A stretch of 64,000 bases of DNA from contig NC_068981.1 in the NCBI RefSeq assembly GCF_001194135.2, positions 108,281,151 to 108,345,150 of the forward strand, written 5' to 3'. This DNA is from Octopus bimaculoides. Taxonomy: Eukaryota. The position numbers and the translations under genes were made by a program. Every line of letters begins with the position of its first letter. The stretch's first letter is position 1. This document shows positions 4,626 to 57,584 of this stretch, piece by piece. The notes below the pieces were generated by a model. The model saw only the letters and a list, made by a program, of their open reading frames with translations, had not been told where the DNA came from and did no database searches.

Positions 4626-4644
4626 AATAATACATAAATATATA

Positions 4645-4800
4645 TCATCATCATCATCATTTAGTGTCCGGCTTCCATGCTGGCATGGGTTACCTTGTTT
4701 GACTGGAATTGGTAAACCGGAAAGCTATACTCGGTTCCAGTCTGATTTATATATACACATATTTGGCATTGGTATAAAAGATTGTGGTCAGCGGTACCAT
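4645..4800 (-). mobile_element. RTE-LINE 3'-end fragment or RTE-tailed SINE
   Basis: (CAT)n followed by ...TCCATGCTGGCATGGGTT, the same terminus as the RTE copies at 16 kb and 40.3 kb. Confidence 0.65.
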
Positions 4801-7429: not shown

Positions 7430-7937
7430 TGAGTACACAGTACATAGAAAATTACCGAAAATTTTTTGAAAAGAATTGCACCAAATTTGGCAAAAATAAT
7501 CATTGGGTGAGTGGTTTGAAACGAGATTATCTTCAAACATACATTAATACAAACACAGATACGCACAGCGTAATTTATTATATAAACAATATATGCGTAT
7601 AGATTACCATTTTTCTGTAATTTTGTCTGCTTCAAAAGAAAACAAACCAAAAAAGCAGATGAAATATGTCATAATTACCAGAGAATAACAATTTTGACAC
7701 CGGCAAAAATTATTGTCGACAAAAACAGCAGTAACTGTATTCAGCTGAATAGACGTCAGTGATTGGTTGAAATTACCGAAATACGACAACTTTTAACATG
7801 AAATAACTTGCAAGATAGAAAGTTTTGTTACGAAGGCTAAGAGAAAAAGATGTTTTATATGACACATTCTACCAGTATCCCAAATTTGAAAGTGTTTCAT
7901 TAAGAAAACAAGTGGCGCCCATCAAATCAGAAAGATC
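7430..7937. mobile_element. Right-end fragment of a long-TIR DNA element family
   Basis: GATTGGTTGAAATTACC...CATTCTACCAGTAT...AGATCC matches the TIR of the 32037-33127 element. Confidence 0.6.
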
Positions 7938-11639: not shown

Positions 11640-11930
11640 AAAAATAATTTTTTGTAACTAAACACTTTCAAAATTCGTATACTGGTAGAATGTGTCACAT
11701 AAAACATCATTTACTCTTAGCGTTTTTGAGAAAATTGTGTATTTTCGAAGTTATTTCGTGTTAAAGTTGTATTTCGGTAATTTCAACCAATCAATGACGT
11801 TTGTTGAGGTGAAAACAATTACTGCTGTTGTTTGTCAACAATAACTTCCGGCGGTGTATATTTCGTTTGTCATTGTTATTTATGACATATTTCATATCAG
11901 TTACGTTTGTATGAATAAACGAGTGTATCT
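11640..11930. mobile_element. Left-end fragment of the same long-TIR family
   Basis: TATACTGGTAGAATG...GTAATTTCAACCAATCAATGACG matches the 32 kb TIR. Confidence 0.6.
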
Positions 11931-12137
11931 GAAACATGTTTACTTCATGGCACCGCCACAATTGTTCGTTCATTTCTGCTGCTTATAGTTTTTTTCCCCT
12001 GTTTTTCAGCTACTATTTTAGGAAAGACATTTTTGCCCCCCTCCTCCTCCAATTTCTTCATTTTTCACATTTTTCCGTAATTCTAACCCTAACCCTAAAA
12101 CCTTAACCCTAACTGTTCAAATGGAAAAGATCCCATT

Positions 12138-12220
12138 ATACATCATCACCGTCGTTTAACGTCTGCTTTCCATGCTGGCATGGGTTGGACGGTTTGACTG
12201 AGGACTGGCAAGCCAGGTAA
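12138..12220 (-). mobile_element. RTE 3'-end fragment
   Basis: CATCATCACCGTCGTTTAACGTCTGCTTTCCATGCTGGCATGGGTTGGACGG. Confidence 0.7.
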
Positions 12221-15964: not shown

Positions 15965-18900
15965 ATAATCATTGTCATCAACATTGAATGTCCTTTTTCC
16001 ATGCTGACATGGGTTCGACAGCTTGACAGGAACTGGTAAAGCCAGAGGCTGCACCAGATTCCATAGTCTGTTTTGACTTGGTTTCTTTGGCTGGATACCC
16101 TTCCCAATGCCAACCACTCCACAGTATACTGAGTGCTTTTTATGTGGCACCAGTGCTTTTTACATGGCACCAGCACCCACACCAACACTTTAATGTAGCA
16201 TCTTGGTTTTCAGACCTCAATTATCTTGGTCCTTTGTCATCTCCTCTGCAAAGTTCAGCGTTTTGAGATCGACCTTCAAAACTTCATCCTATGTATTCTT
16301 GAGTCTCCCTTGTCCATAACTTACCTCTACTTTAAGTGATCAGCACTTCTTTATGTAACTGTCCTCATCCATATGCTTCACATGACCAAACCAGTGCAGT
16401 CTTCTCTCTTGCACACTGCATATAATTCCTCTTGTTCCCAACCTCTCCCTCAATACACCAATGCTCTGTCACACATGCACACTGACATCACGCATCTAGT
16501 AGAGCATACCAGCTTCATTCCTTTCTAATCTTTGCATGTCCTCTGCATTCAGGGCCCACATTTCACTACCATGCAGCATCGCAGTTCATATAATCTTTCC
16601 TTCACTCAGAGTGAGAGAGACCTTTGGTTGCCAAAGAGGTAAAAGCTCTCTGAACATTCTCCATCCTATTTTTATTCTAGCAGTTACACTTTCTGTACAA
16701 GCTCCTCTACTGCTAATTAGGTCACCTAGATAGCAAAAATTATCTACAACTTCCAGAGATCCACCAGGACATTTAAGGAAATCAGTTTCTTGTGTATTTG
16801 TGGTCTTTATGGTTCCCTTACATCTTCTCTGTTAATCTTCCAACTATTTCACTGCACCTCTTGTGTGTCCATAGCTTGCACTGGGTACACCAGATGGAAT
16901 TTCTGCCTACACCCATCCTACATATGGAGCAGGGTCACTTACCTGATGGGTGAAGGGTCCTGTTTAATTTCTTGGTGACTAGGACCTTGGTCTTTGCTAA
17001 GTTTACTTTAAGACCCTTAGATTCCAGGTTCTGTTTCCACATCTGGAATTTCTTTTCTAATTCTATTAGAGATACTGCTATGAGGGCAAGATCAGCAACA
17101 TATAGGAATTCTCATGGGCTTCTAGTCTTAAATTCCTCTCTTGTGGCCTGGAGGACAATGATAAATAGGAGGGGCTGAGGACCAACCTTGTACACCTACC
17201 ATCACTACTATCATCAGTGTACCCATGGCCAACTCTTACTTTATTAACAGCACCCCTGTACATGGCCTGTACTGCTTTCACAAGCTATTCATCTATCCCT
17301 TGCTTCCTCAGGGACCACCATATTACAGAGCAGGATACTCAGTTGAAGGCTTTCTCTAGATCAACAGATGCCAAGTACAACAACTTGTTCTTAACTAAAT
17401 ACTTCTCTTGCAGTTGCTTGACTATGAAAATAGCATCAGTGGTGCTTCTTCGCGATGCAAAGCTGAACTACATTTCATCTTGTCTAATTCTGTTCCTAAT
17501 TAATTGGGCTTATAACTCTCTCCACATCTTTCATCACTTGGTCTAGCAATTTGATACCTCTATAATTACTTCTATCTAAGGCATCTGTCTTGTCCTTGTA
17601 GCAGCTGACTATAATGCTGCTGCAACAGTCACTAGAGATTACATCTTCCTGATTAACTATACAGATGACTATACTGTATCCAATTCAACCCGATATCTTG
17701 AGCATCTCGGTAGTGACTCCTGATGGGCCAGAGGCCTTCCTTGTCTTCATATCTTTAATTGCCTATCTATCATGCTGCTGTCAACTAGGATAGCTGGTCC
17801 CTCTGTTGGGTTCATTCTCTACATTTAATAGTCTCATAGTAGTTCTTGCATGTGTTCCTTTTCAGGATCACTAAGAGCAAGCATACCATTATCTGTCCGT
17901 ACACACTTCTCTCTTGATTCTCTCTAACAGACTATCTGGCATCCAGAACACTGCAAGTCTCTGATCTTCATGCTGTAAGACTTAGGCAAATCTCTTCCTT
18001 TCTACTTCTGCCCTTGCTAGATATACCTGACATCTAGTTTCTCTTTAGGCTATGGTTCTCTACAATCCCCACTCTTCCAGGCCCTTCTCTTCTCTTTTAA
18101 AGCCCTGTCTACCTCACTGTTCCACCACTATGTCACCTTTGCTTCAACCACAAATTTGTTTTGTTTCCCCTTAGTTGATTGTCCCATAAGAACTTCCAGT
18201 TGTCCTCTGCCATATGTCTCTATCTCTACCTCTTCATCAAAGGCTTCATTAACCCCTTGCAGATGGGAAGTGGTACTGACCACATTGAAACACTGTGTGT
18301 GAGCAGTGCCATGTCTTGCTCTGTGTGGCACTGTGTTTTCAAATATACCACCCTGAACAGCCTAATACTTGTATACAGCACAGACTGTCAGTACTAAATC
18401 CGTCTGCAAGGGGTTAAGGATATCTCTATATCTGTGTCCATTTAAGCTTCCAGAGCCTCCTTTCCCATATTGGTTCGTGTCTCAGCATCCTTCAAGCTTT
18501 AGTCCAAAGTCATTAACCTCTAACCTATGATGAGTTGTACATTCTTCACCTGGGAAAGACTTTGCATTGAGAATATGCCTGTCTCTGTTTCTGGTGAGGA
18601 TGTAGTCCATCTGGCTCGTGTGCCCACCAGATTGATGGGTGATCAGATGGCTGGTAGGTTTCCTGAAGTTGGTGTTGCATACCATTAAGTCATTTGCATC
18701 CCAAAATTCCAGCAGTCTTGTTCCCTCCTCGATTCTGGATCCAAACCCATAACCTCCATACATGCCATGAAAACCAACACATTCTTTTCCAATATGACCA
18801 TTGAAGTCTCACCTGCTGAAGGGATTTATAGAAATGGTCCTTCTGAATATCTGCAAGTCTGACATGTGGTGTGTATGCAGGAATAAATGACATTGTTACA

Positions 18901-19290
18901 TTAAACAGGACTAATATTAGCATAATAATCCTATCACACAACCTGACTACCTCAATCACCTTATCCACCCATTTCTCTGCCAAAAGAATACCTACACCAC
19001 CTAACCCATCATTGCTTTCCACCCAGAACTTGTATCTATGTATCTTGCCCATGAGCCATCTTGCTGAGTCTTCTTTCCATCATACCTCTTGCACACACCT
19101 CCACTCAAGCATTTCAAGCATTTCAACAATCTCACCAGACCTACCTTTCATTATGCCGACATTGATTGTGGCAGCTCCATGCTTGTGAACCTGAGATGCT
19201 TTGGAGGCAAGTTGTTGGGGATGTTTTCAGCACTCGGAAAGATTTTAATGGTCTCTTGCCTAAAGGCAATGGGTCCTTAAGCTTGGTGTA
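15965..19290 (-). mobile_element. Near full-length degenerate RTE-clade LINE (APE endonuclease plus RT)
   Basis: INVGIMKGRSGEIVEML, GGVGILLAEKWVDKV, YGGYGFGSR, QMDYIL, downstream RT remnants, 3' terminus ...CAGCATGGAAAAAGGAC with a GAT-type tail; many stops. Confidence 0.9.
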
Positions 19291-25600: not shown

Positions 25601-27354
25601 ATATTGATACATAAACTGAAATATTTTTTTATTTGAAATTTCATAACATAACATGACTGTGAGAACATTTATTAAATTATAATTACCATGGGAGAATTAT
25701 ATTAAAAAAAAAAAAAAAGGAGAGCTTTAACTTATATTATCTCTCTCAACACATTTTGTCTTTCAACAATCTAAATTTTTTCAAATAGTAGGGTTGTCAC
25801 AAACTTGTGGGAAAAATTTGTATTAAGACATTTTTTTGATTCCCTTTAATTGCTTACTAAATGTAATTTGATTGAAAAAAATTAATTAATACATGTAAGG
25901 ATGCTCTTAAAAATCTAAGCTGCAAGTGTCAAACAACTTTATTTATGATGAATAACTTATAGGAAACTCATTTCTTTAAAGTACTAAACAGATATTGAAA
26001 TGAAATCCAATTGTATAGATTGGCAAGATTTGTTTATTAATTTTGTGAACTATTACATTAAAAAAGACTATGCCAAAATAAACGAAATGCAAAGAATTTT
26101 CTCACTGGCAAAAAAAAAGAAAAAAAAAAAGGGTTGGATAAAATAAAGTATTTTTTTAAAAAACAATATAACAATAAAAAGACTATAAATCTTGAAGGTT
26201 TCTTGAAAATGAGTAATATTAAGTTGTCCCTTTCATTCTCTAATAATCTCCAGGTCCATCATACCATGCCTACATACTTATGGTTTTTCTTCAAAGAGAA
26301 AAATCTGTCATCAGATGTGTGAACCATACCAGGAGGGAAAAGTATTATCTAGATAATTGTAATTATTTTTCATAATGTTTAGATTGTTAATTATAGAGAA
26401 CTTTAAAAAGGGTTTCAAGGAACAAAATTAAAATGTGCTGTTGTATAAAATGTTAGGAAAGAATAGAGGTAAGTGTGGCCAGCTTCCATCAAAGATGAAA
26501 TTCAATATGTTGGAGGAATAAATTACATGCTCTTTCAACTTTTCACTGGATACTCACAATATTAAGGATATAATACTTGGAGGATTATTGGAAAAAGATT
26601 CCTTTGACATTTTAAATGATTGATATTAAATATATCAATAAAATATCAATTGTTTTCAATAATGATATTTAGATGACCTCAACAAAATAACATATATTTA
26701 CTGATATATAAGATATTATAGACAATAAAGAATTATTTATGTTTGGGGTCTTATGTAAATAATGACGTGAATACAATTCTTTTCCAGGAAAATATGTATT
26801 GTTTGACTAATACCATGATGGCACATTACAAGTCACTGCTTCTGAAAGTTAGAGAGTTGGTTAGATGAATTTCAAGAAATTTGGAATAAGCAAATTATTT
26901 GAATGGAAAATACTGAGTAGTAAATAATTTTATATAGTTTAACATGATTGTCATGGCAGGGATGAAGACGAAATAAAATTAGAAACTAACTTATTGAACT
27001 TGCTAAATATATGAAGAAATAAAGAGTAACCAATGAAGTTTTATAGCCAGAGTTTTGTCTAAATTCTCAATTTAGGCAATTTATAAAGTCTAGGGGAAAA
27101 AATGCACTTGATTGTCAGCTTCTATTTTAAACGCAAAACTTTAATTTTATAAATGTTATTTAGGTGATGACAATACTTATCATATAATTCTAGAGTAAAT
27201 TTCATAGCTTTAATGATTTTGTTTTGGTAAATCATGATTGATGGATAACAGTTTCGAAGAGAAAGGAGAATAGAAAAACTCCTGTTAATGTATAACTGGC
27301 GACTAGGACTACAAATCTGAATTTGAGAGGCTATTATAACTTGATCACTTAGGT

Positions 27355-27655
27355 CTGGAGAACTGAACAAATGGTATCAATGTAACACAGTGTCAGTCGG
27401 TCAAGAGGTCTGGTAAACTGAGCTCGTGTTACTAATGTAGCCTGGTCAGTATGTCAGAGCTGAGCTAGAGATGTAGGTGTAGTCATCATTTAACGTCCGC
27501 CTTCATGCTAAATGATGATGATGACTACACCTACATCTCTAGCTCAGCTCTCCAGACATACTGACCAAGCTACATTAATAATACTAGCTCAGTTTACCAG
27601 ACTTCTTGACCAACTGACACTGTGTTACATTGATACCATTTGTTCAGTTCCCCAG
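27355..27655. repeat. Long inverted repeat (arms about 138-147 nt, 16-nt loop)
   Basis: Left arm ctggagaactgaacaaatggtatcaatg... matches the reverse complement of the right arm ...cattgataccatttgttcagttccccag, with about 7 mismatches and 2 small indels by manual alignment. Confidence 0.97.
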
Positions 27656-30373
27656 TAGTCTGTTTGTTTAATCAGTGTTCAAACAAGTTAAAGACAGTAT
27701 AAGCTGGTATCAGAAAGAAAGCTGATTCACATGTTTCTTTGCTAGATTCACTTCTATAATCTCCATTATAACACCCTCAGCTCCTTTGAACTATTAAAAC
27801 AAAAACATCTTCCAATGAAGTTCATTTGATTCATGTAGGTCTTACAGTTTCACATTCAGGTCTCACAATGTTTTTTTCCCCCCAGACATCAACCTACATA
27901 AATTTAAGCTGAATATCAACAGCATTAATCTCGTTGCTTGCTCTTTCTCTACCTGATTAATAACTGAGTAAAGAATTATCACAAAACCCCAACAAATATT
28001 CAGTTTATGTTATTTACATCACCAGTTACTGATTTTGATTGATAACCTTAATCAGTGAAGTACTATTTGATTAAGATGAAGCTAGGCAGTATTTATTTCA
28101 GCATTTCACGACGAAAAATAATGGGTATAGTTGTTTGGTCAGTGAATTTCTGTTACAAGCATGTGGTTCAGATTTGATCCTACTGTGAGAAACCTTGGAC
28201 AAATGTCTTATATCATAACCTCATGCTGATCATTATCTAGTATGGAAGCCCATTTTATACATATGTATGTGCATATATCATTCATTTACATATATTGGTG
28301 AAAAGTATAACGATCAAGAAATCTGATAAACCAGCGCCTTCAATATCTTGTGGCATTTTTTTGCATCTGAGTTGCTCAAATGCTCCCATGCAGTGAAATA
28401 AGTGATTGTTTCATCAGAGACCTCTACTCAAACAATGTTATTTAATAAAATCCAATAAAAAAATCAATATTAGAACTGAATAAATAATCAATCTGAACTT
28501 AACAAAAAACCTAGACCATAAAAAATAGAACTCAAAACATTTAGTAACGTAATAGAAATATTAAATTATGTTATTTTGATTATCATATAAATTAGATAAT
28601 TCAATACAACCAGTTAAGTGGAGGGCTTTAGGAGGTAAAAAAATTTAAATAAGTGTAAATAATTTGAAGTATTGTCCAAAAGTTGTTAGCAAGTGCATGA
28701 TAATGGAAGGATAATATAAAATAAAAAGAAACAATATGTAAATGGAATTATTTCTATGTAATAAAAACATTTAATATATTAGATACAAAATATAATTATA
28801 AATAATCATTTTATACAATTGTGAAGTGAGACATTTCATACTAATTAGGAATCAAAATTCTGAATGCATATCTACATATCATTCAAGATTTGATAATTGA
28901 TGATATATAGTGATCTTGTCTAACAAGTTACTAAAAGTAACAACCATTATCAATGGAAAAAAAAAATGTCCCTCTCTTTCTTACATTTATTACAAAACTA
29001 TATAATCACACCTTACTATTTTTTAACGTCCTTAATTACTCTTTGAACTGAAGAAATGTTACTAAAATATGAAGGTAGTATAAATTTACATATAAAGGTT
29101 TACTTCATTCTATTTAAATCTTTAAACTCAGTAACTGATAATCTTTTCATTGATTTCTAGTTTTCTTTTAATGTACAGTCATATGAGATAACAATTTCGA
29201 TTATTAGGCATCAAAAGTATTGCCATATCATAACAACATATTTTATGCAAACTTCTTAGGTCTTTGGAAATTGTGTGAAACATTATATAAACTATATGTT
29301 TTATATACAGATTTTTCCAGTGAATTGTTATAGTTTAAGCAGAGGTGTCAACAACAGAAATAAGCTCTAACCTGAAACACTATATCTGGAAGAAAACATT
29401 CAAATAAATTTAAATAAACATGGAATTTGGTAACCATATATATATATATAATCAGATCACTGTTTTATCTTAAACTTCAAAGGCTTTTACTAGTAGCCAA
29501 AGAACAACTGTATTGCTATACTGCTTCTTATAATCCAAGTCAATCAATATTGGAATTTAATTCAGTTAAATTGGATAACAAATTTTAAAAATAAAAAAGA
29601 TGACCTTGAAAAAATATTTTAACATCTAATATTTTAATTCCAATTCTTGTGAATAGTAAAACCAAATTTTCATTTATTTATTTACATTACTTTTAATAAA
29701 TCTCTTCAAATATTTAAGAGATTTAATTATTTCAGAATGTTCATATCATTAGTTACAACTAAATTCATACATTTAAGAACCAGGTGGCAAAACTCTAAAT
29801 ATTTACAGCTTTAAAAAGGAATTGAAAAATCCAACTGGAAAAAAAAAAACTTATATTAAACAAAAAATTTTTATTAAATAAAAAATTATGCATGGTTGGT
29901 AAAATATCAAAAATGTAAGTTACTATGTAAAATGTTATGAGCACTATAGCATTGCTGAAGACTATGTCTCTGGATTTACTTGTGCTATATTTCTTTAAGT
30001 ATTCTATAAAATTGCAGTTTATAAGATAAAATCATACTTATTAGGAGACGAGAGATTCCAATCTTCTCAACCAAACAGTTATGTAAAGTTCTTTTTCAAA
30101 ACTCAAGATTTCAAGGTGAGGAACAATAATAATATATTCAATAGAAATTATTCATAAGCAGTAATAAATACTAGATAATAAAAAAGAATAAATTTCTATG
30201 ATATTCCAACAAATTAAAATTGGTTATATTAAAGAAACTCAAGACATATCAAGCTTTATATGTTCTCCTGTCAAACTTGAATATGCTTTCCAACATCATT
30301 ATTTGTTTTAGTCAAAGAACCACAATAAGAAGTTTACAAAACATCATTTTGTATATATTATATACCATCAGTA

Positions 30374-30841
30374 TCAAAGTTCTGTGATTTGGTATTTCAT
30401 GGAAGATTTTACAGGAGACGAAGGTGCTTTTTGATCATATGGTCTTTGTGATGATTGATAGTTGTTCGATAGTAAATACTGTTCTTGGCCAGAACTAAAA
30501 TTGTGAGTATTAGTGTTAGCACCATTTGCATCTCCTACAGTACTATTGCTGCAATATGAGCCACGATAACCAGCTGGCGTATTCATACGTGGAGCTGTAA
30601 GAACACTGATTGTGGCAGGAGCAAAATCTCCAACAGTTCCACCAAGAGAGCCACCTGGAGAATCCACTTTAGAGTTTTCACTATTTATAGTTTTAATAAG
30701 CTGAGTAACAGGATCAATGCAAAACTGCTCATCGGGATAGCGGGCATTGAGGCGTTTTATGTGACAATCTCGGCAGAGCAATGTATTCTGGTATGGATAG
30801 CATCGCTTATCAGGTTCATCTGTAAGTTGCATGCCACAATC
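30374..30841 (-). CDS. WTIP: LIM gene last coding exon, 468 nt: end of LIM3 plus a 124-aa tail and TGA stop
   Basis: Acceptor ttcttatag|GAT TGT GGC ATG; contains ORF 30374..30832; CYP and CxxCH ligands complete LIM3. Confidence 0.96.
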   Translation of the reverse strand, partial: DCGMQLTDEPDKRCYPYQNTLLCRDCHIKRLNARYPDEQFCIDPVTQLIKTINSENSKVDSPGGSLGGTVGDFAPATISVLTAPRMNTPAGYRGSYCSNSTVGDANGANTNTHNFSSGQEQYLLSNNYQSSQRPYDQKAPSSPVKSSMKYQITEL

Positions 30842-32036: not shown

Positions 32037-33127
32037 TGGATCTGTTCAATTTGGCTCAGATTTTTTACTCAATTTTTTTTTTAACTAAGCAGTTTGAAAC
32101 TTCATACACTGGTGGAATGTCTCATATAGAACACAGTTTACTTTGAACATTTTTCACAAAATTTGGTATTAAAGTTGTTGTATTTGGGTAATTTCAACTA
32201 ATCAACGACGTGTATTCAGTTGAAGAAAGCTACTGCTGTTTGCAATAGTAAGTGAAGCGGAACAACTTCCGGGTATCTCTACTAAATGTCACCACTCTGT
32301 TCTATTTTATTTTTTATTTACTGCTTGTGTTGCAAATTATACACCTTTTTTTTTTTTTTTTTTTTGGTTCTCGCGTTGGAGTAACCAGTAAATATCGAAG
32401 AATCAACACCAAGAAGGAGTAAATATTATTTACATATATTTATTCCTTTGCCCGACATCAGTGCTTTGTCCACACTTAAAGCACACCAGTGTTTCAAAGA
32501 CCTATAGAGCTACAAGTCCGCAGCTAGCTTTTTTGTTGTTGACATGTATGTAGTTTCAAAATGCCTTATTTTACAACTATGAAGTCTATTGTTATTGTCA
32601 TGATTTTATATTACTATAATCAACAACAAACACATTTTGTCAATATAAAAGTCTTTATTAGATTAAAAATAACATTATCAAAACATGAAGGTGAAACAAA
32701 ACAAATAGCGGCTTATACACTGGAAAATACAGTAATCGCTGGTTGCTAGTTGATAGTGTAGAAGGGAGGGAAAGAGTAAGGAATGCATGATGCTGACTAG
32801 AAAGGAAGAAAAGATAAAGGTGGCATCGTCTCATCATACAAATAGATCAGAGTGGTAACATTTAGTAGAGATGGCTGGGAAATTGTTTCTCTTCAATTAC
32901 TATCGCAAATAGCAGTAGTTTTCTTCAACTGAACACATGTTGTTGATCGGTTGAAATTACCCAAATGCAACAAACATGAAATAACTTCTAAAATACCAAA
33001 TTTCGTCAAAAATGTTCAAAGTAAACCATGTTCTGCATGAGACATTCCACCAGTATACGAAGTTTCAAACTGTTTAGTTTTTAAAAAATTAAGAAAAAAA
33101 TCTGTGCGCCAAACTGAACAGATTCAT
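32037..33127. mobile_element. Non-autonomous DNA element or large MITE with ~220-bp TIRs, in the last intron
   Basis: 32037-32255 (GGATCTGTTCAATTTGG...) is inverted at about 32885-33127 (...CCAAACTGAACAGATTC); no coding interior. Confidence 0.8.
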
Positions 33128-36536: not shown

Positions 36537-36605
36537 CTCACAATGGTAGCAGTCAACATGGAAATCCCTATCCATTGACACAACACGAACTGTTTCTTCA
36601 GTGCC
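36537..36605 (-). CDS. WTIP: LIM gene exon, 69 nt: GTEETVRVVSMDRDFHVDCYHCE
   Basis: Acceptor ttttaccttcag|GGC, donor GAG|gtgagt; the RVVSMDRDFH motif is typical of zyxin/Ajuba LIM3. Confidence 0.96.
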
Positions 36606-37719
36606 CTGAAGGTAAAATTAGACAATTTTTTTACATGTGCATGTTAAACTATATTCATTGAAATTTATTCAATAGAAATGTATAATGAAAATTATTTAAC
36701 AAAACTCATAGTAATTCATTTTACTTTAAAATATAGAATAAGTATTCCTTTTCCTCAATAGCAATAAAAATATGTTGAAACTAACAGCTAAATCAGATAG
36801 GAGTGAGTAAATTGCAGCCCACAGGGCATTCTGAATGGCATGCCTTAACAAAAAATTATCTTTGAATTTTTTTTTAGTTGTGAGGCCCACCTGATGATGA
36901 GTGAAGTGGCAAAATTTACAAAATGGTTGCTAATGTATGAGCTAAATATTTCATCACAATTATTTTAGAAGATAAATGCAAAATTCATTCACAATCAAGA
37001 CATACGTAACATAAACATGGAAAAAATTTCAATTAGCATTATTGAAACTTTTTCATGTATATACTACTAATGACTATTTTAGACAAGTAAGCCTGATCAT
37101 GATGCTTGCTAATGGAGGTGTTTTCACTGGATATATATTTATTAGTTAAAACACATTACTTTCTTTAGAAAAATAATATTAATTTCAACAGACACCAAAC
37201 CAACCTCCCTACCTTTTCCTTTCTGGTATCTATGTATATCTTTTCTTCAGCTGTCACTACACCCATAACATTGTCTAAGGAAGTGAGTTGAAACGCACTA
37301 CAGCAGCATTTGGACATGTTTGAATGATAATTTATATGTTCAAAATATACCCAGATGGATAACATGTTTCTGAACTTTGGATAATTTGAAAGAAATAAAA
37401 ATAAATAAATAGAAGGGGACACACTAATTTAGCAGTCCTTGAATTTAGTAAGTTATTCTAGTTTTTGTCAATTTGCATTTAATATCATTTTGTTTGGCAG
37501 CCACTGAAAATTTTTGTATTTCATTCTAGAGTTATGTCCATGACTAAATTCTTCTATCATTCATTTTCGTGGCTACACACACACACATATATATATGCAT
37601 ATATACACAGACATGACATAAGTAAATAGACACTCTTATAATCATTAAAATTTCTTTAAATCTAAAATTATGCATTCAAATTATTTATTAGTTGTTATAA
37701 TGTGAATATTTAATATTGA

Positions 37720-38675: not shown

Positions 38676-40293
38676 GGCCCTGCTCGACCTGTAGAAAAGG
38701 CATAGGTAGAAACTCCATAAGATGTACCCAATGTAAGCTATGGACACATAAGAGGGGCAGCAATATCAAAGGAAAGTTAACTGGGAAGATAGTTTTTGTA
38801 TGTGGCAAATGCTCAGGCGCTATAAACACAGAAAATGTGCAGAGAACAGCTTCTGTCACATTCCAGGGAGAAAAACTAGAAGTAGTTGAGAGCTTCTGTT
38901 ACCTAGGAGACCAAGTCAGTAGCAGGGGTGGATGTGCTGAAAGTGTAGCTGCCAGAATAATAATAGCCTGGGTAAAGTTCACAGAGCTCCTACATCTGCT
39001 GGTGACAAAGGGCCTCTCGCTAAGAGTAAAAGGTAGAGTGTATGATGCATGTGTGCGAACAGCCATGCTACATGGCAGCAAAACATGGGCCATGACTGCT
39101 AAGGACATGTGTAAGCGTGCAAGGAATGAAGCCAGTATGCTCCGCTGGATGTGTGATGTCAGTGTGCATACACGACAGAGTGTAAGTGACCGGAGAGAAA
39201 AATTGGAATTAAGAAGCATCAGATGTGTTGTGCAAGAGAGACAACTGCGCTGGTATAGTCATGTGTTGTGTATGGATGAGGACAGCTGTTTGAAAAGGTG
39301 TCACACCCTAGCAGTTGAGGGAATCTGTGGAAGAAGTAGACCCAGGAAGACATATGATGAGGTGGTGAAGCACAACCTTTGAACGTTGGGCCTCACTGAG
39401 GCAATGAGAAGTGACTGAAACCTTTGGAGATATGCTGTGTTTGAGAAGACCTGGCAAGCCAAGTGAGACCATAGCCCATGGCCTATGCCAGTGGGTGTAA
39501 CCAGCCCATTTATGAATACCCCACCATTCATTAGACAATAAACCTTGCTTGTGAAGACCTATTGAGGCAAGTAAAATCAAAATCAAAATGGAAATTGCTG
39601 AGGTGGCTGACGACAGTACCACCTGATAGGCACTTGTGCCAGTGGAATGTTAAAAGCACATCCGAACGTAGGGTGTAACTGGCCCACTTATGAATACACC
39701 TCATTCATTGGACAATGAACTTTGCTTGAGAAAACCTATTGAGGCAAGTGTAAACCAATCAAAATCGCTGATGTGACCAATGACAGTACTGCCTGATTGG
39801 TACTCGTGCCAGTGGAACATTAAAAGAAGCATATCTGAGCATAATCGTTGCCAGAGCCACGGATTGGCTCCTGTGCCGGTGACATGTGAAAAGCACCATT
39901 CGAGCATGATCGCTGCCAGCTTTGCTGGTGGCACATGAAAAACAATATTTGAGCATCATCGTTGCCAGTGCCACTGGACTGGCTCCCATGCAAGTAACAT
40001 GTAAAAACACTGTTTGAGCATGGTCGTTGTCAGTGCCACTGGACTGGCTCCTGTACAGGTAACACATAAAAACACCGTTTGAGCGTGGTCGTTGCCAGAA
40101 CCGTGTGAGTGGCCCTCGTGCATATAAAAAGCACCCACTACACTCTTGGAGTAGTTGGCGTTAGGAAGGGCATCCAGCTGTAGAAACTTTGCCAGACCAG
40201 ATTGAGCCTGGTACAGCCTCTGGCTCACCAGTCCTCAGTCAAACTGCACAACCCATGCCAGCATGGACAGGGGACGTTAAACGATGATGATGA
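38676..40293 (+). mobile_element. 5'-truncated RTE LINE, antisense to the host gene
   Basis: ORF 38837..39382 (LEVVESFCYLG...KGRVYDACVRTAMLHGS...RWYSHV...GRSRPRKT); 3' end GGACGTTAAACGATGATGATGAT. Confidence 0.92.
39835..40130 (+). repeat. Tandem ~65-bp repeats in the RTE 3'UTR
   Basis: About 5 copies of a GAGC(A/G)T..TCGTTGCCAG...AAAA.CAC unit. Confidence 0.75.
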
Positions 40294-40495
40294 TATATAT
40301 ATATATATATATATAATTTGGATGACATTGTTGAGGTCAGTTCAGCCTCACATTTAACTGACTTAGTGTTACATACCTAATTTAATGGGCACATTGCAGC
40401 ATTTTTACAGGCAATGGTCAATCCCAGCCTAGAAAAATAGATTCAAAAGCTATTCAGCAAAGATTTCAGTAAAATTATATATCATAAATACATAC

Positions 40496-40547
40496 CTCAA
40501 CAGGTGTGATTGCTTGACCACAGGCTGCACACTTTGGAGCATAAATC
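40496..40547 (-). CDS. WTIP: LIM gene exon, 52 nt: (R)IYAPKCAACGQAITPVE
   Basis: Acceptor tttatttacag|G, donor GAG|gtatgt; the first nt completes the split Arg codon; start of LIM3. Confidence 0.95.
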
Positions 40548-41069
40548 CTGTAAATAAATATACATAGTTTATGCAATGGAAACAGAAGAAAAAAAATGGA
40601 CTAAAATTTTGTACTAACATCTGGATATTTTTTAATTAGTTTAGGTTCATCATCAGTTGCTTTGATATGGCAATGACTATGCAATTCATAAATTAAGTGA
40701 AGAAACAAGATGGCGGCTTAGTGTGAGAGTGTCAAACTTAGAGCATGTCAATGTTGAATGTGAGAAGAAAATACTGATTTGACTGCATTATTAAACTTAA
40801 CTTCACAGTTTCAATCCAATAACAGGCAATATGTATGTTACAGCATTGGAAAACTTACTTTAATCTATTTCTACAAGTTAAACTTGAAAAAATAGAAACT
40901 GACCCATCATAAGCCAAGTTTTTAAAGGAAATTCAATCATAAAACTTATGTTCTGAAATGATATGCACATTTCCTTGCAAAATACAATGGATACTCAGCT
41001 AAAGCTTGTTATCACAATTTGGACTAAAGTAAAATATCTGAATTCATCCAAGTAATAAGCACAGTATGA

Positions 41070-41697
41070 TACCATTAATCCTCGAGTATAATCCACATTT
41101 TTCCCCCCAAATTTAAAGGTCAAAATCCCTAGTGCATACTATATATGAAGTTAAAAATGAAAAATATTTTCTAAGCAATATCCAAGTCTCTATTTGCTGT
41201 CCGGCAATGTTTATTCAGATGCATTTTGTGATGTCGGGAGCGAAAATACCTTAAGCTAAGCCTGAAAGCAATGAAGTCATAAAAGAATCATCCATAACTT
41301 GCAATAAGCAACATTTATTAAAATAAAAGTGTTGTATATCGTCTTCACTGGATTGTACTCAGGATGACGTTGTATGGAAAGATGAAATAAATGAAAGTGA
41401 ATCTTCTGATGTTGACTATGAATTTGACGATAACAGAGATTTACACTACAATAATGCTGACATGTTTACGGAGGAACAAATGGAACAGTTATTTGATGCT
41501 GAAAGTGAAGTTGAAGTTGAAGGATTTGAATAAATGTTTTTGCTTTTGCTTTTGTAACTGATAGTGATAAATAAAGGCAATTTTTAGGGGGCTGTATCTC
41601 TGAAAAATTTAAACCTTGTGTATAATACACACCCCTTCTCTAACTTGAGTCAAGGAGGCCTATATAACGTCCTTGGTTTGTAAACATATATACGGTA
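41070..41697 (+). mobile_element. Internally deleted pogo-like transposon retaining the transposase acidic C-terminus
   Basis: Ends TACCATTAATCCTCGAGTATAA / ...TATATACGGTA; 41327-41533 reads KCCISSSLDCTQDDVVWKDEINESE...EVEGFE*, like the pogo KC.IS..LDG.EDD motif. Confidence 0.7.
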
Positions 41698-41794
41698 ACG
41701 TCCTTTATTATTATTGTATATATATAACATAATGCAAATGTGTAGCTTTTTTGTGCACTTTGTTTTCAAAAAATAAAGAAATAACAGTAATAAC

Positions 41795-41885
41795 GTCATC
41801 ATCATCATCGTCGTTTAACGTCCGCTTTCCATGCTAGCATGGGTTGGACGATTTGACTGAGGACTGGTGAAACCGGATGGCAACA
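41795..41885 (-). mobile_element. RTE 3'-end fragment
   Basis: CATCATCATCATCGTCGTTTAACGTCCGCTTTCCATGCTAGCATGGGTTGGACG. Confidence 0.75.
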
Positions 41886-41894
41886 AGTAAATTG

Positions 41895-42031
41895 CCTTTA
41901 CATATTTATCAGTTAGAAAATTTTGCTTAGAAAATATTTTTCATTTTTAACTTCATATATAGTACACAGTAGAAATTTTTACCTTTAAATTTTGGGAAAA
42001 AAGTGTGGATTATACTCGAGGATTTACGGTA
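41895..42031 (-). mobile_element. Inverted second copy of the pogo-like left end
   Basis: Reverse complement TACCGTAAATCCTCGAGTATAATCCAC...GAAGTTAAAAATGAAAAATATTTTCTAAGCAA matches 41070-41180. Confidence 0.8.
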
Positions 42032-42202
42032 TATATAAATCAAAGCAAAATATTTACTGAAGATACAGAATAAAAGTCTGAAGACTGAAATATAACCAAA
42101 CTATTTAAAAATTTAATCTGTATAAAATAAATATGGCAAATAAGGAATATTAGATCATTCAAGAAGAGATACATACATACATACATATATATATAAATAT
42201 AC

Positions 42203-42333
42203 CTGTGATAATCAGCAACACAATATATTTTGTTTTCAACATCAATTGTAAAAGGTACACCATCTAAACATTCATTACACTGACAACAGCGGAAACAACC
42301 AGGATGGTAAGCTTTACCCATTGCTTGTAAGAT
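42203..42333 (-). CDS. WTIP: LIM gene exon, 131 nt: [43 protein letters not shown](R)
   Basis: Acceptor ttttcag|ATC, donor AG|gtatat (phase 2); lies within ORF 42040..42354; LIM2 zinc ligands present. Confidence 0.97.
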
Positions 42334-43319: not shown

Positions 43320-46240
43320 TATATATACTTTTCAAAAGACACAATTCATCATATAAAATATATATAAATATATATCCATATGAGATCACCTGAAATTGTA
43401 AAGGTTGAAGGTCAAATGTACATGATCAATGCATTACAAAATCGAAAATATTAAAAAGATGTATGGGTAGCTCAAAAACGCAAATACTTGAGTGCAGAGA
43501 TCAAATTCATACATATCCTATGGCCGTTTCAGGAAAGGTATTTCAGAATGGGTGAACTATTTGTACCCATCTCAAATATATACATTTCCTTCATCAGGGA
43601 TTAATTGAAAAGTTTAAAAAATTATTTAAAAGATTTTAAAAGACTTCATACTTGGACAAGGTATCCTATGTTGTGATAAAATTTTGTTCAGATAACTATA
43701 AATTCTAAAATGACGGTTGAATATACTACAAATCTTACAGAAAAATGACGCTTTTACGGTTATTCTAAAACATATTGAGAATTTAGGTTTCAATTAACAT
43801 GGGTTGGTTATACTTTAATATGAAAAAAACCTGTTTACAAAATATTAAAGCATCCAAAACTTATTTAATAATATTTTTCTACTTGTATGAAGTAATGTTA
43901 ATGGATTCTTTAGTGCATAAACCACACATTCTAGTGTCTGTTACATGGAGTAGTTTGAATAATTATTGACCAATCTAGTTTAAATTGTTTATTTTGCGCT
44001 TTTAAATTATCTATGTGTCTGGCTAATGCTGTCAAATTTTTCATGCTTGGGTTTGTAAATGAATTTTTGTGCCCCCATATCAAATTTTAAAGTCTATTGT
44101 GTTTTTTTTTCAAACAGGATCCTTTTAATGGGCAAAATTCTGGGGATCGGCAATTACAGGTTTGTTTTATGAAATTCAGATTACTACTCTCCTGATTACG
44201 TTCCATGAATTCCCTTTCCAAAATATCCTTTTTAAGTTTAAATTTATCATTAGCAGCAATGATGAATCCTAAATTAGGTGAATATAACAGTTTTAAACTA
44301 GATTTGTTAAAGATGGGAGGATATAATTATGATCCTGATGAAAGTTTTTTCAATGATCTTAAAGAATAATTCTGGGAGATTCTTAATGTGAAGGGAAAAA
44401 GGTAGGGTGAACCAAATTATTTCCTGTTTTCTAGTGGGTGTATTCCTAACCTGCCAATTTCTTACTGAATTTATTGTAAAGTTATAACTAAAAGGTTGAT
44501 AATATCTCCTATGTATATGGGGAATCCATTGTTCAACAGGCTCACTTACTGATGGAATGTCAATATTTAATTTAGTTAAGCCTGGAAAGAGTTTACTTTT
44601 AAATATTGTATTTCTTATACAATAACTGCCAGGAAAACATATCTTTTAGGGATAAGAACTGGACTCAAAATGACCTTCAGGATAAGTTTGATGTAACAAT
44701 GAGGTCATTGGACTCAGCACAAGTTATATAAGGATGATGCATTATTTACATTAACTGGCTCCCCATTGCAAACTTTGATTAGGACTAGATAAGTTTTGAT
44801 AAAATTTTTTAAGGAATATAACTTAGATATAACATTCGAAAATATTACAAAAGTAGTAAGCTTTCTGGATGTTTACCTTAAATCTCAATAGTGGCTTGTT
44901 TTCCCCTTACAACAAGCCAAATAAAACAATACAGTATATTAATACTATGTCAAATCACCCTAAAAGTGTTATAAATAGGGTAATTAAAGGGGTGTCTATA
45001 AGAATATCTAATCTTTCAGCTAATGAAATAATTTTCAATAATCATGCACAGCACTCAAGAATAGTGGTTTCCATGAGAACGCTTATCATATAATACAATA
45101 ATTAAAAGTAAACTAGGTAAACTCTTTCCAGGCTTAACTAAATTCTGTAAATAAGAGAGATATCATCAACCTTTTAGTTATAACTTTATAATAAAGTCAG
45201 TAAGAAATAGGCAGGTTAGGAATAACCCCACTAGAAAACAGGAACTAATTTGGTTCACCCTGCCTTTTCCCTTCAAGTTAAGAATCTCCCCGAATTGTTC
45301 TTTAAGATCATTGCAAAAAACTTTCATCAAGATTATAATTATATCCTCCCATCTTTAACAAATCTAGTTTAAAACTCTCATATTCACCTAATTTAGGATT
45401 CATCATTGCTGCTAATAATAGATTTAAACTTAAAAAGAATACTTTGGAAAGGGAATCCATGGAATGTAATTAGAAGAGTAGTAATCTGAATTTCATAAAA
45501 CAAACCTGTAATTGCCGATCCCCAGAATTTTGCCTGTTAAAAGGGTCCTGTTTGAGAAAAAATGTAGTTTATAAGTGTGAAGTAAGTACCTCAAAAGAAC
45601 CCAAGAAAATCTACATAGGGAGCACAATAAGCTTTAAAACTAGATATAGGGAGCATAAAAATTCATTTACAAACCCAAGCATGAAAAATTCAACAACACT
45701 AGCCAGACACATAGGTAATTTAAACTAGATTGGTCAACAATTACTCAAACTACTTCATATAAAATACATCCTAGAATGTGTAGATTATGCACTAAAGAAT
45801 CCATTAATACACTTCATGTGAGTAGAAAAATATTATTAAATAAGATTTTGGATGCTTTAATATTTTGTAAACAGGTATTTTTCAACTTGAAAATTTTTTT
45901 ATCATTAAAGTATAGCCAATCCATGTAGTATATTTAACCCTCATTTTAGAATTTATTTTAGTTATCTGAACAAATTTTTATTGCAACATAGGACACCTTG
46001 TACAAGTATGAAGTCTTTTGAAATCTCTTATATAATTTTTTAAACTTTTCAAATAAGGAAATATTTTTGATTTAGCAATGCATTGGCCGTGTACATTTAA
46101 CCTCCAATCTTTTTATGTTTTAGAACAGATTCACAATTTCAGGCAATCTCATACAGATGTATATTTTATATTTATATATATTTTTGTATTTATATATTAT
46201 ATATTTTACATGATGAATTGTGTCTTTCAAAAAATATATT
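43320..46240 (+). mobile_element. Penelope-like retroelement remnant: 5'-truncated RT/GIY-YIG copy (+) preceded by an inverted copy of its own 3' part
   Basis: LYKDDAL (YxDD, ~44730), FLDV..LNLNSG.FSPYNKPN..YIN..SNHP (thumb), VVYK..IYIGST.SFKTRYREHK (GIY-YIG, ~45570-45660); 43320-44605 is the reverse complement of 45100-46240. Confidence 0.88.
43515..43601 (-). ncRNA. Type I hammerhead ribozyme motif, Penelope-associated minimal type
   Basis: Minus strand reads ATCC-CTGATGA-AGGAAA..(internal hairpin)..TTTCCT-GAAA-CGGCCAT-A-GGAT: full core, 4-bp stem I, 6-bp stem II base, near-palindromic stem III ACGGCCAT. Confidence 0.75.
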
Positions 46241-46405: not shown

Positions 46406-47116
46406 GGGCGTCTTTCAATTTCTGTCTACCAAATCCACTTTGCATTTGAAATGAGTTAGGGGATTTATATTTTGTATTGTTCATAGCTAGAGAGTATAAA
46501 CGTACAATAACATTTCTTTGATATGTAGTGATTGAGTATTTGAGTTGTGAAAAAGGTGACAAAGTTGTCATGTCACCAATTCATAGAAGTATTGTATATT
46601 GGCATAGTGTTTCAGTTTCACATAGAAGATGCTTGTATGCAGAAAGTTAGGAAGCAATAAAGGTAATTTCAACTGCATAAATGTGTGTGTTGTTATAAGT
46701 AACAATAAGTAGTTCCTTAATGTACAGAAGGAAGAGTACACCAAAGCTGATAAGAGTTTATGGACAGATAACCTAGTCAGTACACACAGTAATGATGTAG
46801 TCAAACAAGCTTCCAATCTAAAGATAAATGCAGGACATAGGCAGGCAAATTAGCTAATGGTTCTCATGTAGGGAACAAACACATCACTGATATCAAGTGC
46901 AGTAACACTGCTTTTACCAAAGTTCTCAAGAGTGAAGGACCAATGGTGAGTGACTGGATGCCTACATAATTATTTTACTAAAAGGTTAGAACTTTTAAGA
47001 TACAAAATACTGAATGGATGAGACACTGCTAAAAAACACACACAATCATTGTTATAATGAAAGTAACCCTAGATAAAATTTAGGCAAATGCATATATGCA
47101 GAGAAGTAATACCTAC

Positions 47117-47179
47117 CATATCCATGATCAAATGACCACAAACACAGCATTTATCAGCAGTTTGTTGAAAACCAGAATA
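47117..47179 (-). CDS. WTIP: LIM gene exon, 63 nt: YSGFQQTADKCCVCGHLIMDM
   Basis: Acceptor tttgtttttag|TAT, donor ATG|gtaggt; start of LIM2. Confidence 0.95.
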
Positions 47180-55440: not shown

Positions 55441-56022
55441 CAAAGTTTAAAAAAGGCTGTCCTATTCAGAGCTCTGCAAGTAGTAATAAAGTCAAGCTAA
55501 GAGAGCAGTAACTCAGATTTAAAACTGACATAATAGAGGGGACATTCTACTTCTGCCACAGACCTTTCCAGAACTCACAGCATGATAAAATACACCCAAA
55601 ATACACACGTAATATGGTTAGTGATGGGAAGGACATCTCGCTATTCCCCCTCCCCCACCCACTCACACATACATACAGTTTTTTTCTGTTGCTGGGTGTG
55701 CCTGAGACTAAAATGCCTTGGCAAGTGACAAACCATTGCGATATCCATCCAATCCATACTAGTATGAAAAACAGATGTAAAATTATATGGAATCAGAAAA
55801 TCAAAGAGCTTAAAAAATATGAGTAATAACATATTTACAGAATAAAAATTTGTAAAGGTAAACTGTTAAATTACTGAAAATAAAACTATATCACCACCTA
55901 ACAATTTACTAGGTCATAAACCACAATGACATTTTCTAATGACAGTTATGAAAGAACAGCAATTAATATCACTTAGAAACACCTAGCTTATTAATTATAT
56001 TAGTGAAATAACATTAACTTAC

Positions 56023-56090
56023 AAGGTAATCTTCTTCACAGTAGACTTTTCCATGGACGTTGTAAAATGCTTTCCCTCGCAGAGTACGGC
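56023..56090 (-). CDS. WTIP: LIM gene exon, 68 nt, C-terminal half of LIM1: (G)[22 protein letters not shown]
   Basis: Acceptor ctttcatcag|GC, donor CTT|gtaagt; begins after a phase-1 intron. Confidence 0.95.
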
Positions 56091-57584
56091 CTGATGAAAG
56101 AAATTTTAGCAAATTTTTTGAAGATTTAACATTTAAAACAATTCAAGAACAACTTTTCTATTTTTCTTTCATTTATTGCTGCTTCATACTATACTTATAC
56201 ATCAGTCCATCCGAGCACAATTCCAATAATATTTCAGTTTTTCTGAGAAGAGGTTGCTAACTTCTCATTCAACTTTTCTATTACATAAAATTAAATAAAA
56301 AAATTTCCACTGGAGCCTTTGCAATTCCCATCCTAGGAAATTATTCCATGGAAACAACCTAAGATGGCACAAAACTTATCAGTGAAAGAAATGTTTTCAA
56401 AACTCAACCAATACTATAGCCAAAAATGGATTGGATTATTCCAGTTCGCTATTTAAGAAAGAACACAATAAGTCCAAATGCTTCTACTTTTATATCAAAC
56501 TAAGTTCCATTGTTAATCCACAAAAGTGAAATCTTACATTATTTCAACAAATATAAATACATCCTACCTCTAATATTATCTTTAATGTAACATAATTACC
56601 TATTTACTATTAATTTTCAAAAATATAAGTATTTGCATATCTTTAGTAAGAAGAAACTGAATATATGCATGTACATATAGAAATATATACACCACTGTTT
56701 TAAAGATTTTTTATTAAGATGGGTCTTTTGTAGAGGCAATATTTTTTTGACAACCAGATGCCCTTCCTACAAGTAGGGTGGAATTTTTTCAGTTGGATAA
56801 ACAAACAGATGCCAGCATAAAGACAATAGCAGCAATAAAGTTTGTATTCACAACCATGTGGTCAATGGTTCAGCCATTGACCCAAATTTATTGAAGGACG
56901 TAAGCAGAGTTACTGATTTCTATACAATAATAAAATCTTATGAAACATCTCAGTCAACATATTACATTTCTAAATGTATAGTAGTTCAGAGAAGTCAAAA
57001 CAAATCCATTACCTAAATTTCACAATGCTTGGATATTCTATTCTCCAATAGATATTCATTCTTTGCTCCTCTCCCTACCCCCGATAACTGATAATCTGAC
57101 ATTATTAATAGTTACAAGAGAGTAATACCAATTGCATTTGATAGCCCTTCTCTATACAAGATGAGGAAAATTGATGAGGTTAATTTTCAGCTTGAACTTA
57201 TGTAGGTCAACATCTGCAAGAAAATATGTGGTTAAGGAGAAATTATTGTGTAAAGTTTTCAATTCAGAACCTAGGGGAGTAGTAATATATAGCAAATATA
57301 AAAAGAAATAGGCATGTTGGTTAGGTTTTAGAAAGTTGGTAGGTCAGAGAAACAGAGGTTATTATAGTTATAATAGATAGAAGAAAGAAACGCATTGAAT
57401 CTGTGAGCTAGTGGTTGTTGTGTGGAGGTGAGTTTTTACTTATCAGTTAACTGGCTTGAGATACTAAAAGAGAGTAACAAGGGACCTAATATTTGTAGTG
57501 AGTTGGAAGGCTTCATATGTGTATCATTCAAGCATAGTAATGTCCAATTGTTATCCAAGAAAAAATATAAACATTCAAACGTGT

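Follow-up and report, generated by a model that had tools for sequence, protein, structure and literature searches.

When target-primed reverse transcription (TPRT) is carried out by the R2 protein in human cells, synthesis of the cDNA can snap back before the 5′ junction is formed, and such products constitute a "snap-back" class of junctions (PMC11371274). For human L1, a report on somatic insertions describes foldback inverted duplications of 52–220 bp, which were found at the 5′ head of about 0.3% of them (PMC10191854). Activity of RTE-type LINEs in octopus is known (PMC9115989, PMC13282606), and long inverted repeats forming double-stranded RNA (dsRNA) are reported to be exceptionally common in this animal, where they drive hyper-editing (PMC5625713).

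Here we analyse a long hairpin from a 64,000-nt stretch of octopus DNA (hereafter the window; all positions are counted from its first letter). Comparison of its arms, junctions and loop with other sequences of the same window suggests that this hairpin is probably the fossil of one abortive TPRT event performed by an RTE-like LINE, in which the growing cDNA turned back and copied its own primer strand. Coordinates of all features mentioned below are collected in Table 1.

Structure and folding of the inverted repeat

The inverted repeat at 27355–27655 was confirmed by repeat detection, blastn and gapped alignment. The original prediction described it as a near-perfect hairpin with arms of about 140 nt and more than 90% identity, and this description holds: blastn gave 92.8% over 138 nt. 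Repeat detection divided it into two collinear pairs, one of 101 nt with 93% identity (27355–27455/27555–27655) and the other of 34 nt with 100% identity (27456–27489/27518–27551). In the gapped alignment the left arm, taken together with the adjoining tail sequence (27355–27492, 138 nt), faces 147 nt of the right arm (27509–27655). The two differ by 7 substitutions, a 3-nt indel (27552–27554) and a 6-nt difference in the length of the (ATG)n run, which is longer by two ATG units on the right.

RNA folding gave a long, near-perfect intramolecular duplex of about 140 bp on either strand. Its predicted energy is −240.8 kcal/mol for the minus-strand RNA, while dinucleotide shuffles, used as controls, gave −85.5 ± 6.4 kcal/mol (z −24); for the plus-strand RNA it is −234.7 kcal/mol (z −29, shuffles again at about −85 ± 6 kcal/mol). 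Two A-C mismatches and one A-G mismatch were expected in the minus-strand RNA and are indeed there, but the number of G-U pairs is four and not three as had been counted by hand. Four of the six transition differences appear as G-U in this RNA, which is not a significant excess. All differences between the arms weaken or break pairs. No compensatory change is visible in the comparison of the two arms.

In the part of the arms where these substitutions fall (27359–27442 versus 27568–27651), 6 of the 7 differences have G or C in the left arm and A or T in the right one, when both are read in the same orientation. This bias suggests that most changes occurred on the copy or that some of them were made during copying, although a ratio of 6 to 1 is not significant and the changes affect both strands. 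A strand-specific deaminase signature was considered for the same differences and rejected, the changes being mixed across strands.

The left arm has an internal periodicity of its own. Three degenerate tandem units of approximately 45–55 nt may be recognised in the region 27351–27484; units 0 and 1 share 71% identity, and units 1 and 2 agree at 80% over 30 nt. Tandem Repeats Finder applied to the region 27000–28000 detected nothing.

Genomic surroundings

The hairpin is located downstream of a jub/Ajuba-like LIM-domain gene, the last exon of which ends with ..KYQITEL*, as it does in relatives, and five upstream exons of which were found by tblastn. On the strand of the gene the distance from its stop codon is 2719–3019 nt, in agreement with the 2.7–3.0 kb expected. 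Between the stop codon and the hairpin there are five AATAAA and seven ATTAAA hexamers, and over the 8.4 kb scanned the density of these poly(A) signals corresponds to chance expectation.

Table 1. Features of the hairpin, of the LINE family and of the neighbouring gene (positions in the window)
Feature	Position	Strand	Remarks
Left arm	27355..27478	+	Proposed original target-site flank and primer strand for cDNA; three degenerate 45–55-nt tandem units
GTAGTC, proposed target-site duplication, copy 1	27479..27484	+	3′ end of primer strand, just before the tail
LINE microsatellite tail (CAT)n	27485..27489	+ (cDNA strand)	(ATG)n on the sense (minus) strand of the element
21-nt LINE 3′-end fragment	27490..27510	-	TTAACGTCCGCCTTCATGCTA on the + strand; ends in the apical loop of the family stem-loop
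Unpaired loop of the hairpin	27493-27508		16 nt within the LINE fragment; from RNA folds
Right arm	27509..27655	+	Inverted copy of 27355-27492, including TAAA and (ATG)4 from the tail junction
GTAGTC, proposed target-site duplication, copy 2	27655..27660	+	Last base of the right arm and first five of the right flank
Decayed LINE copy of ~3.3 kb	15968..19250	-	Tail family defined by its final ~80 nt; interrupted by stop codons and frameshifts
5′-truncated, tail-only LINE copy	41798..41877	-	Closest match to the hairpin loop
LINE tail copy	4641-4721	-	
LINE tail copy	12137-12216	-	
LINE tail copy	40220-40299	+	Inverted; extends further than ~80 nt
Last coding exon and stop codon of jub/Ajuba-like LIM-domain gene	30374..30841	-	Stop codon 30374-30376; ORF 30374-30832
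Five upstream jub-like exons	36537-36611, 40496-40561, 42175-42333, 47114-47179, 56017-56115	-	tblastn

For the last exon the best relative is P0001 (ENA ERZ21867824, locus L001, contig ctg118421l, 163667–184212), which has 61% protein identity and is the only one with full-length similarity; proteins of the window's own species or genus were absent from the collection searched. No hairpin was found downstream of the orthologous exon in this locus, and its comparison with the window revealed neither common interspersed repeats nor common UTR sequence. Because none of the window's interspersed repeats is shared, this locus is judged from its sequence to come from a distant lineage.

The hairpin had been placed in a block poor in transposable elements, and the region of 18–32 kb is really free of within-window repeats. 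The arm, expected to be unrepeated in the window, has no second copy in these 64 kb (the best other match in blastn has E 0.08), and the flanks of the hairpin are likewise unique there. Outside the window, a 27-mer of the outer arm and a 28-mer of the inner arm had 0 exact matches in metagenome contigs. For a 48-aa ORF of the right arm a word-index protein search gave no candidate and a HMMER scan over 1.84 billion representatives gave 0 hits. Neither this ORF nor an 82-aa ORF at 27122–27370 is recorded in the assembly index. All these external searches are weak negatives, as the contig and protein collections cover cephalopods poorly.

At least four other loci of the window contain long inverted repeats. 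One of them, much larger than the hairpin, is composed of arms of approximately 1.1–1.2 kb (43355–44596 and 45117–46184) with a spacer of about 520–650 nt and sits in an intron of the jub-like gene. Identity of its arms is 93–100% near the centre, falling outward to 75% and then to 69%, and it could give rise to far more dsRNA than the hairpin at 27355–27655. The element at 41069–42032, flanked by TA at either end, carries terminal inverted repeats of 113 nt (88%), looks like a non-autonomous Tc1/mariner-like element and serves as a local example of a genuine element with terminal inverted repeats (TIRs). The tail-only LINE copy at 41798–41877 sits within it. The segment 41798–42032 was therefore rejected as a second snap-back candidate: 41069–41181 and 41920–42032 are the terminal repeats of the TA-flanked element, and the LINE tail is inserted between them. 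One more element has terminal inverted repeats of about 200 nt (32074–32270 and 32878–33088, 85–86%), and further pieces of its family are found at 7723–7908 and 11766–11829. Three tandem units of 65 nt at 39938–40132 and a repeat with 170-nt spacing at 39587–39826 lie in a G+C-richer stretch, which adjoins the inverted LINE tail copy at 40220–40299.

LINE family represented in the loop

The centre of the hairpin reads GTAGT CATCAT TTAACGTCCGCCTTCATGCTA AATGATGATGATG ACTAC and includes (CAT)2 followed by 21 nt from the 3′ terminus of a LINE family. The loop had been supposed to be an RTE 3′ terminus of the kind present at 12.15 and 41.8 kb. Its similarity to these tails was reproduced: the loop matches 41808–41836 with 86% identity over 29 nt (E 5.6e-4), and also 12152–12176, 4654–4681 and 40272–40293. 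The RTE label itself falls short of proof. In the decayed copy at 15968–19250, whose family tail occupies 15968–16046, the reverse transcriptase domain RVT_1 is scored at 27.7 bits against the Pfam cut-off of 29.6, and another piece scores 16.2 bits. Upstream of the reverse transcriptase endonuclease-like motifs such as DFNGHIG and ..HHRLEV can be seen by eye in broken frames, while no Pfam family matched the endonuclease region. Because the 3′ end is short and carries an (ATG)n tail, it is plausible that the source was an RTE-type LINE; the interpretation of the hairpin does not depend on this clade.

On the sense strand every copy of the family terminates in (ATG)n, and most of those other than the decayed one retain only about the last 80 nt. 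Judging from these remnants, severe 5′ truncation is normal for the family in this window and early abortion of its copying would be usual. The sense RNA contains an invariant stem CCAUG-NNNN-CAUGG nested in CGUCC/GGACG, which is separated from the (AUG)n tail by about 20 nt. The stem never varies among the copies and so offers no covariation; it may be the structure recognised by the reverse transcriptase of the element. The copies at 41800 and 12141 diverge by 6%. Around the other tail copies, low complexity or ambiguity of the target-site duplications prevents their use for fixing the usual length for the family. A search of the literature for the tail and SINE sequences as text found no publication.

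Junctions and direct repeat

Orientation of the LINE fragment determines which of the arms was the primer strand. The hairpin has TTTAACGTCCGC after (CAT)n, and the same order is seen in all five copies of the family, which on the plus strand reads (CAT)n and then TTTAACGTCC.., that is, as a cDNA strand growing 5′ to 3′ from a primer at the left. Given this orientation, only the left arm could have been the primer. The mirror reading with the right arm in this role was considered and does not fit the family sequence. The left arm is also continuous with its flank, because the tandem sub-repeat begins already at 27351 and includes 4 nt that precede the inverted repeat, and those 4 nt are missing from the right arm; continuation of the sub-repeat into the right flank was sought, and the match obtained was not significant.

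The right arm starts with TAAATGATG(ATG)2, which is what CATCATTTA gives as its reverse complement. The tail is, thus, contained in the inverted copy, and copying must therefore have crossed a junction between flank and tail that had already been formed. This excludes landing of a LINE in an older palindrome, as the inverted copy was templated by the existing flank-tail junction. The family match extends to ..CATGCTA (27510) and ends within the CTAG or CTGG tetraloop at the apex of the family stem-loop. Its last dinucleotide, TA at 27509–27510, is at the same time the first one of the inverted copy and has its partner in TA at 27491–27492, which gives a microhomology of 2 nt.

The hexanucleotide GTAGTC occurs directly before the tail and again at the end of the right arm, so that the pair brackets exactly the tail, the LINE fragment and the right arm, which is the geometry of a target-site duplication. 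G27655 belongs both to the end of the right arm and to the second GTAGTC, representing a 1-nt microhomology at the 5′ junction. In position pairs sampled from the window a 6-mer repeat at two junctions is found by chance in 0.07% of cases if an exact position is demanded, in 0.5% with slack of ±1 nt and in 1.2% with ±2 nt; for a 5-mer the values are 1.5% and 3.9% with slack. These figures should be read with the reservation that the repeat was noticed after inspection of the junctions. Being only 5–6 nt long, GTAGTC is suggestive as a target-site duplication of the inserted block. The whole inverted repeat is flanked by ..CACTTAGGT on the left and TAGTCTG.. (TAGTCTGTT..) on the right, which share only an offset TAG, and no target-site duplication around it was found in the flanking sequence.

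Origin of the hairpin

The original prediction had proposed that an abortive retro-insertion with template switching duplicated the flank into a palindrome. This proposal is supported and becomes sharper owing to the tail orientation, the presence of the tail in the inverted copy, the GTAGTC repeat and the 2-nt microhomology. While these parts are seen in the sequence itself, we infer from their arrangement one event and the order of its steps. The plus strand would have been nicked after ...GGTGTAGTC (27484), and the 3′ end so released would have primed synthesis of cDNA on the (AUG)n tail of the element. Only 21 nt past the tail would then have been copied, through the 3′ half of the stem-loop to its apex, where the structure itself may have caused the stop. 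The 3′ end of the cDNA (..CTA) could at this point have snapped back on TA at 27491–27492, leaving a loop of 16 nt, and a polymerase, either that of the element or one of the host, would then have used the tail and about 130 nt of the primer strand as its template, thus producing the right arm. Joining of its end across the staggered break, with the 1-nt microhomology at G27655, would have left the 5–6-nt duplication GTAGTC. If all of this was a single insertion, it comprises 27485–27660, and in the empty site ..GATGTAGGTGTAGTC would have been joined directly to TGTTTGTTTAATC...

Divergence between the arms (7/138, approximately 5%) is similar to the 6% between copies of the family, and because of this similarity the date of the event fits the period of activity of the LINE family. 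If the arms have undergone gene conversion, this estimate is a lower bound on age.

Alternative explanations

The same anatomy might arise in two steps. An extremely 5′-truncated LINE insertion, consisting of the tail and 21 nt with its GTAGTC duplication, would come first, and a template switch during replication would follow, in which the polymerase departed at ..CTA, used the opposite or nascent strand as template for 145 nt and then resumed at the next base. Replication template switching is able to make perfect hairpins in one event and does so frequently in primates (PMC10710096). Departure and return points adjacent in the ancestral sequence are typical of such switches, while snap-back of the cDNA predicts the same adjacency, and the TA microhomology suits either kind of polymerase. 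What makes this scenario unlikely is its demand for two independent rare events at the same nucleotide, namely at the 5′ junction of a 27-nt insertion: the switch point coincides with the 5′ end of the LINE fragment in a block that has GTAGTC at both its ends. One TPRT event with snap-back accounts for the position of the switch directly.

The 300-nt unit might alternatively be one copy of a mobile foldback element or of a MITE with long terminal inverted repeats, repeated elsewhere in the genome. The window is not devoid of other elements with long terminal inverted repeats (41069–42032 with TA at both sides, 32074–33088, 43355–46184), tandem sub-repeats in the arms are usual for foldback elements, and one window of 64 kb is compatible with a family of thousands of copies. 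We consider this origin improbable, nevertheless, as no duplication flanks the whole inverted repeat and the only junction repeat brackets one arm together with the centre. The centre, moreover, is the 3′ end of a LINE whose tail is itself included in the inverted duplication. A high-copy MITE, which the original prediction named among the findings that would refute it, would be expected to have further copies: none was found in the window and none in the metagenome and protein searches, although the latter, in collections poor in cephalopods, count as weak negatives.

Equally improbable appears the idea that the hairpin is a functional RNA element maintained by selection, either in the 3′UTR of the jub-like gene or in a transcript of its own, where it might serve as a source of hairpin RNA or miRNA, a platform for ADAR or a site of Staufen type. 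Location in the 3′UTR, with use by ADAR, Dicer or Staufen or as a miRNA source, had been suggested in the original prediction. Such a role would be in line with the very stable structure on both strands, with the position 2.7–3.0 kb past the stop codon on the strand of the gene in a block free of within-window repeats, with the exceptionally strong hyper-editing of long dsRNA in octopus (PMC5625713) and, to an insignificant degree, with G-U in 4 of the 6 transition differences. On the other hand, each of the arm differences weakens or breaks a pair. The 12 poly(A) hexamers that precede the hairpin occur at chance density, the one relative compared has no hairpin past its orthologous exon, and loci able to form dsRNA are common both in such genomes and in this window. 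The stem is also about four times as long as that of a pri-miRNA, and at gathering thresholds no Rfam family matched the hairpin. Below threshold the region 27442–27568 gave hits of 33–40 bits on both strands to four unrelated families, mir-279, MIR4374, mir-643 and mir-61; the two best of them, mir-279 (40.2 bits against 56) and MIR4374 (38.9 against 105), fall on opposite strands. We read these hits as the generic score of a long stem. The alignment to mir-279 has UGACUA in common with the mature miRNA, while position 7 of the seed differs, and the bases so aligned belong by origin to the tail and to the target-site duplication.

An assembly artefact, whether from a read that is chimeric or palindromic or from collapse of a repeat, can practically be set aside: the scaffold does contain N gaps and some types of library are known to generate palindromes, but the nearest gap is more than 15 kb away, the arms differ by 7 substitutions and 2 indels, and the centre is asymmetric with a recognisable LINE fragment, whereas artefactual palindromes are perfect and loopless.

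Expected RNA products and significance

Any transcript crossing the hairpin, in either direction, is predicted by the folds to form nearly perfect dsRNA of approximately 140 bp. In an octopus-like genome long dsRNA is expected to attract hyper-editing by ADAR. By analogy with what is described in the literature, the duplex would, if transcribed, very probably be edited by this enzyme. Nothing found points to a present function of the hairpin, and most likely it persists as a neutral inverted duplication. One can also imagine, as a distant speculation, that snap-back of LINEs offers cephalopods a way to make long hairpin RNAs in a single step out of unique sequence lying in long 3′UTRs, and that this very locus is transcribed with the jub-like mRNA and then hyper-edited by ADAR or diced into small RNAs acting on the host gene. 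If this were true, it would be a retrotransposon route to new genes of structured RNA, parallel to template switching in primate replication.

If the origin by an abortive TPRT event is correct, the locus represents a clear case, found in nature, of a rare by-product of retrotransposition, of which R2 has furnished experimental examples and human L1 somatic ones. Unique flanking DNA would have been turned here into a germline inverted repeat of 140 bp, which would long have persisted beside a gene, and events of this kind would be one concrete source of the unusually numerous dsRNA-forming loci reported for octopus (PMC5625713). In a genome-wide count, the pattern to be searched for is a fragment of a LINE tail and, after it, its own 3′ flank in inverted orientation, with a short duplication at both ends of this block.

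Comparison with known systems

A snap-back or foldback junction is an accident already known from other retrotransposons, and no new mechanism or function is revealed by this locus. With MITEs and foldback transposons it has in common the inverted arms, the short centre and tandem sub-repeats within the arms, but it differs from them in the absence of a duplication flanking the unit, in the LINE tail at the centre and in being single-copy within the searches made. Like the hairpins and new miRNA genes born by template switching (PMC10710096), it would have acquired a perfect stem in one event by copying of the opposite strand of adjacent sequence, and it is a potential source of a new structured RNA where transcribed. 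Those hairpins arise at replication forks, are mostly tens of bases in size and have neither a target-site duplication nor a retroelement, while the stem described here is approximately 140 bp long. A long near-perfect inverted repeat with a short loop is also characteristic of the hpRNA loci producing endo-siRNA in Drosophila and of palindromes hyper-edited by ADAR (PMC5625713); our locus resembles them in the structure of its sequence.

The likeness to the foldback insertions of human L1 (PMC10191854) is closer, since in both cases target-adjacent DNA forms an inverted duplication of the same size range at the 5′ head of an insertion with a target-site duplication and a tail. According to that report, it is the upstream target at the 5′ side that is duplicated in L1, and the duplication is attributed to host polymerases acting at the final resolution. 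In the octopus hairpin the duplicated DNA is the tail-side flank, i.e. the primer strand, and so the topology of the L1 products may differ.

The junctions left by R2 proteins in the PRINT experiments (PMC11371274) resemble the locus in having antisense sequence between the upstream target and a truncated insert. They differ in their setting, for here we deal with a germline fossil in a mollusc, left by an RTE-like LINE that is not site-specific. They differ also in proportion: the RNA-templated part is only 21 nt long in our case, so that nearly all of the copy is target flank, and the product is a clean hairpin made of unique DNA.
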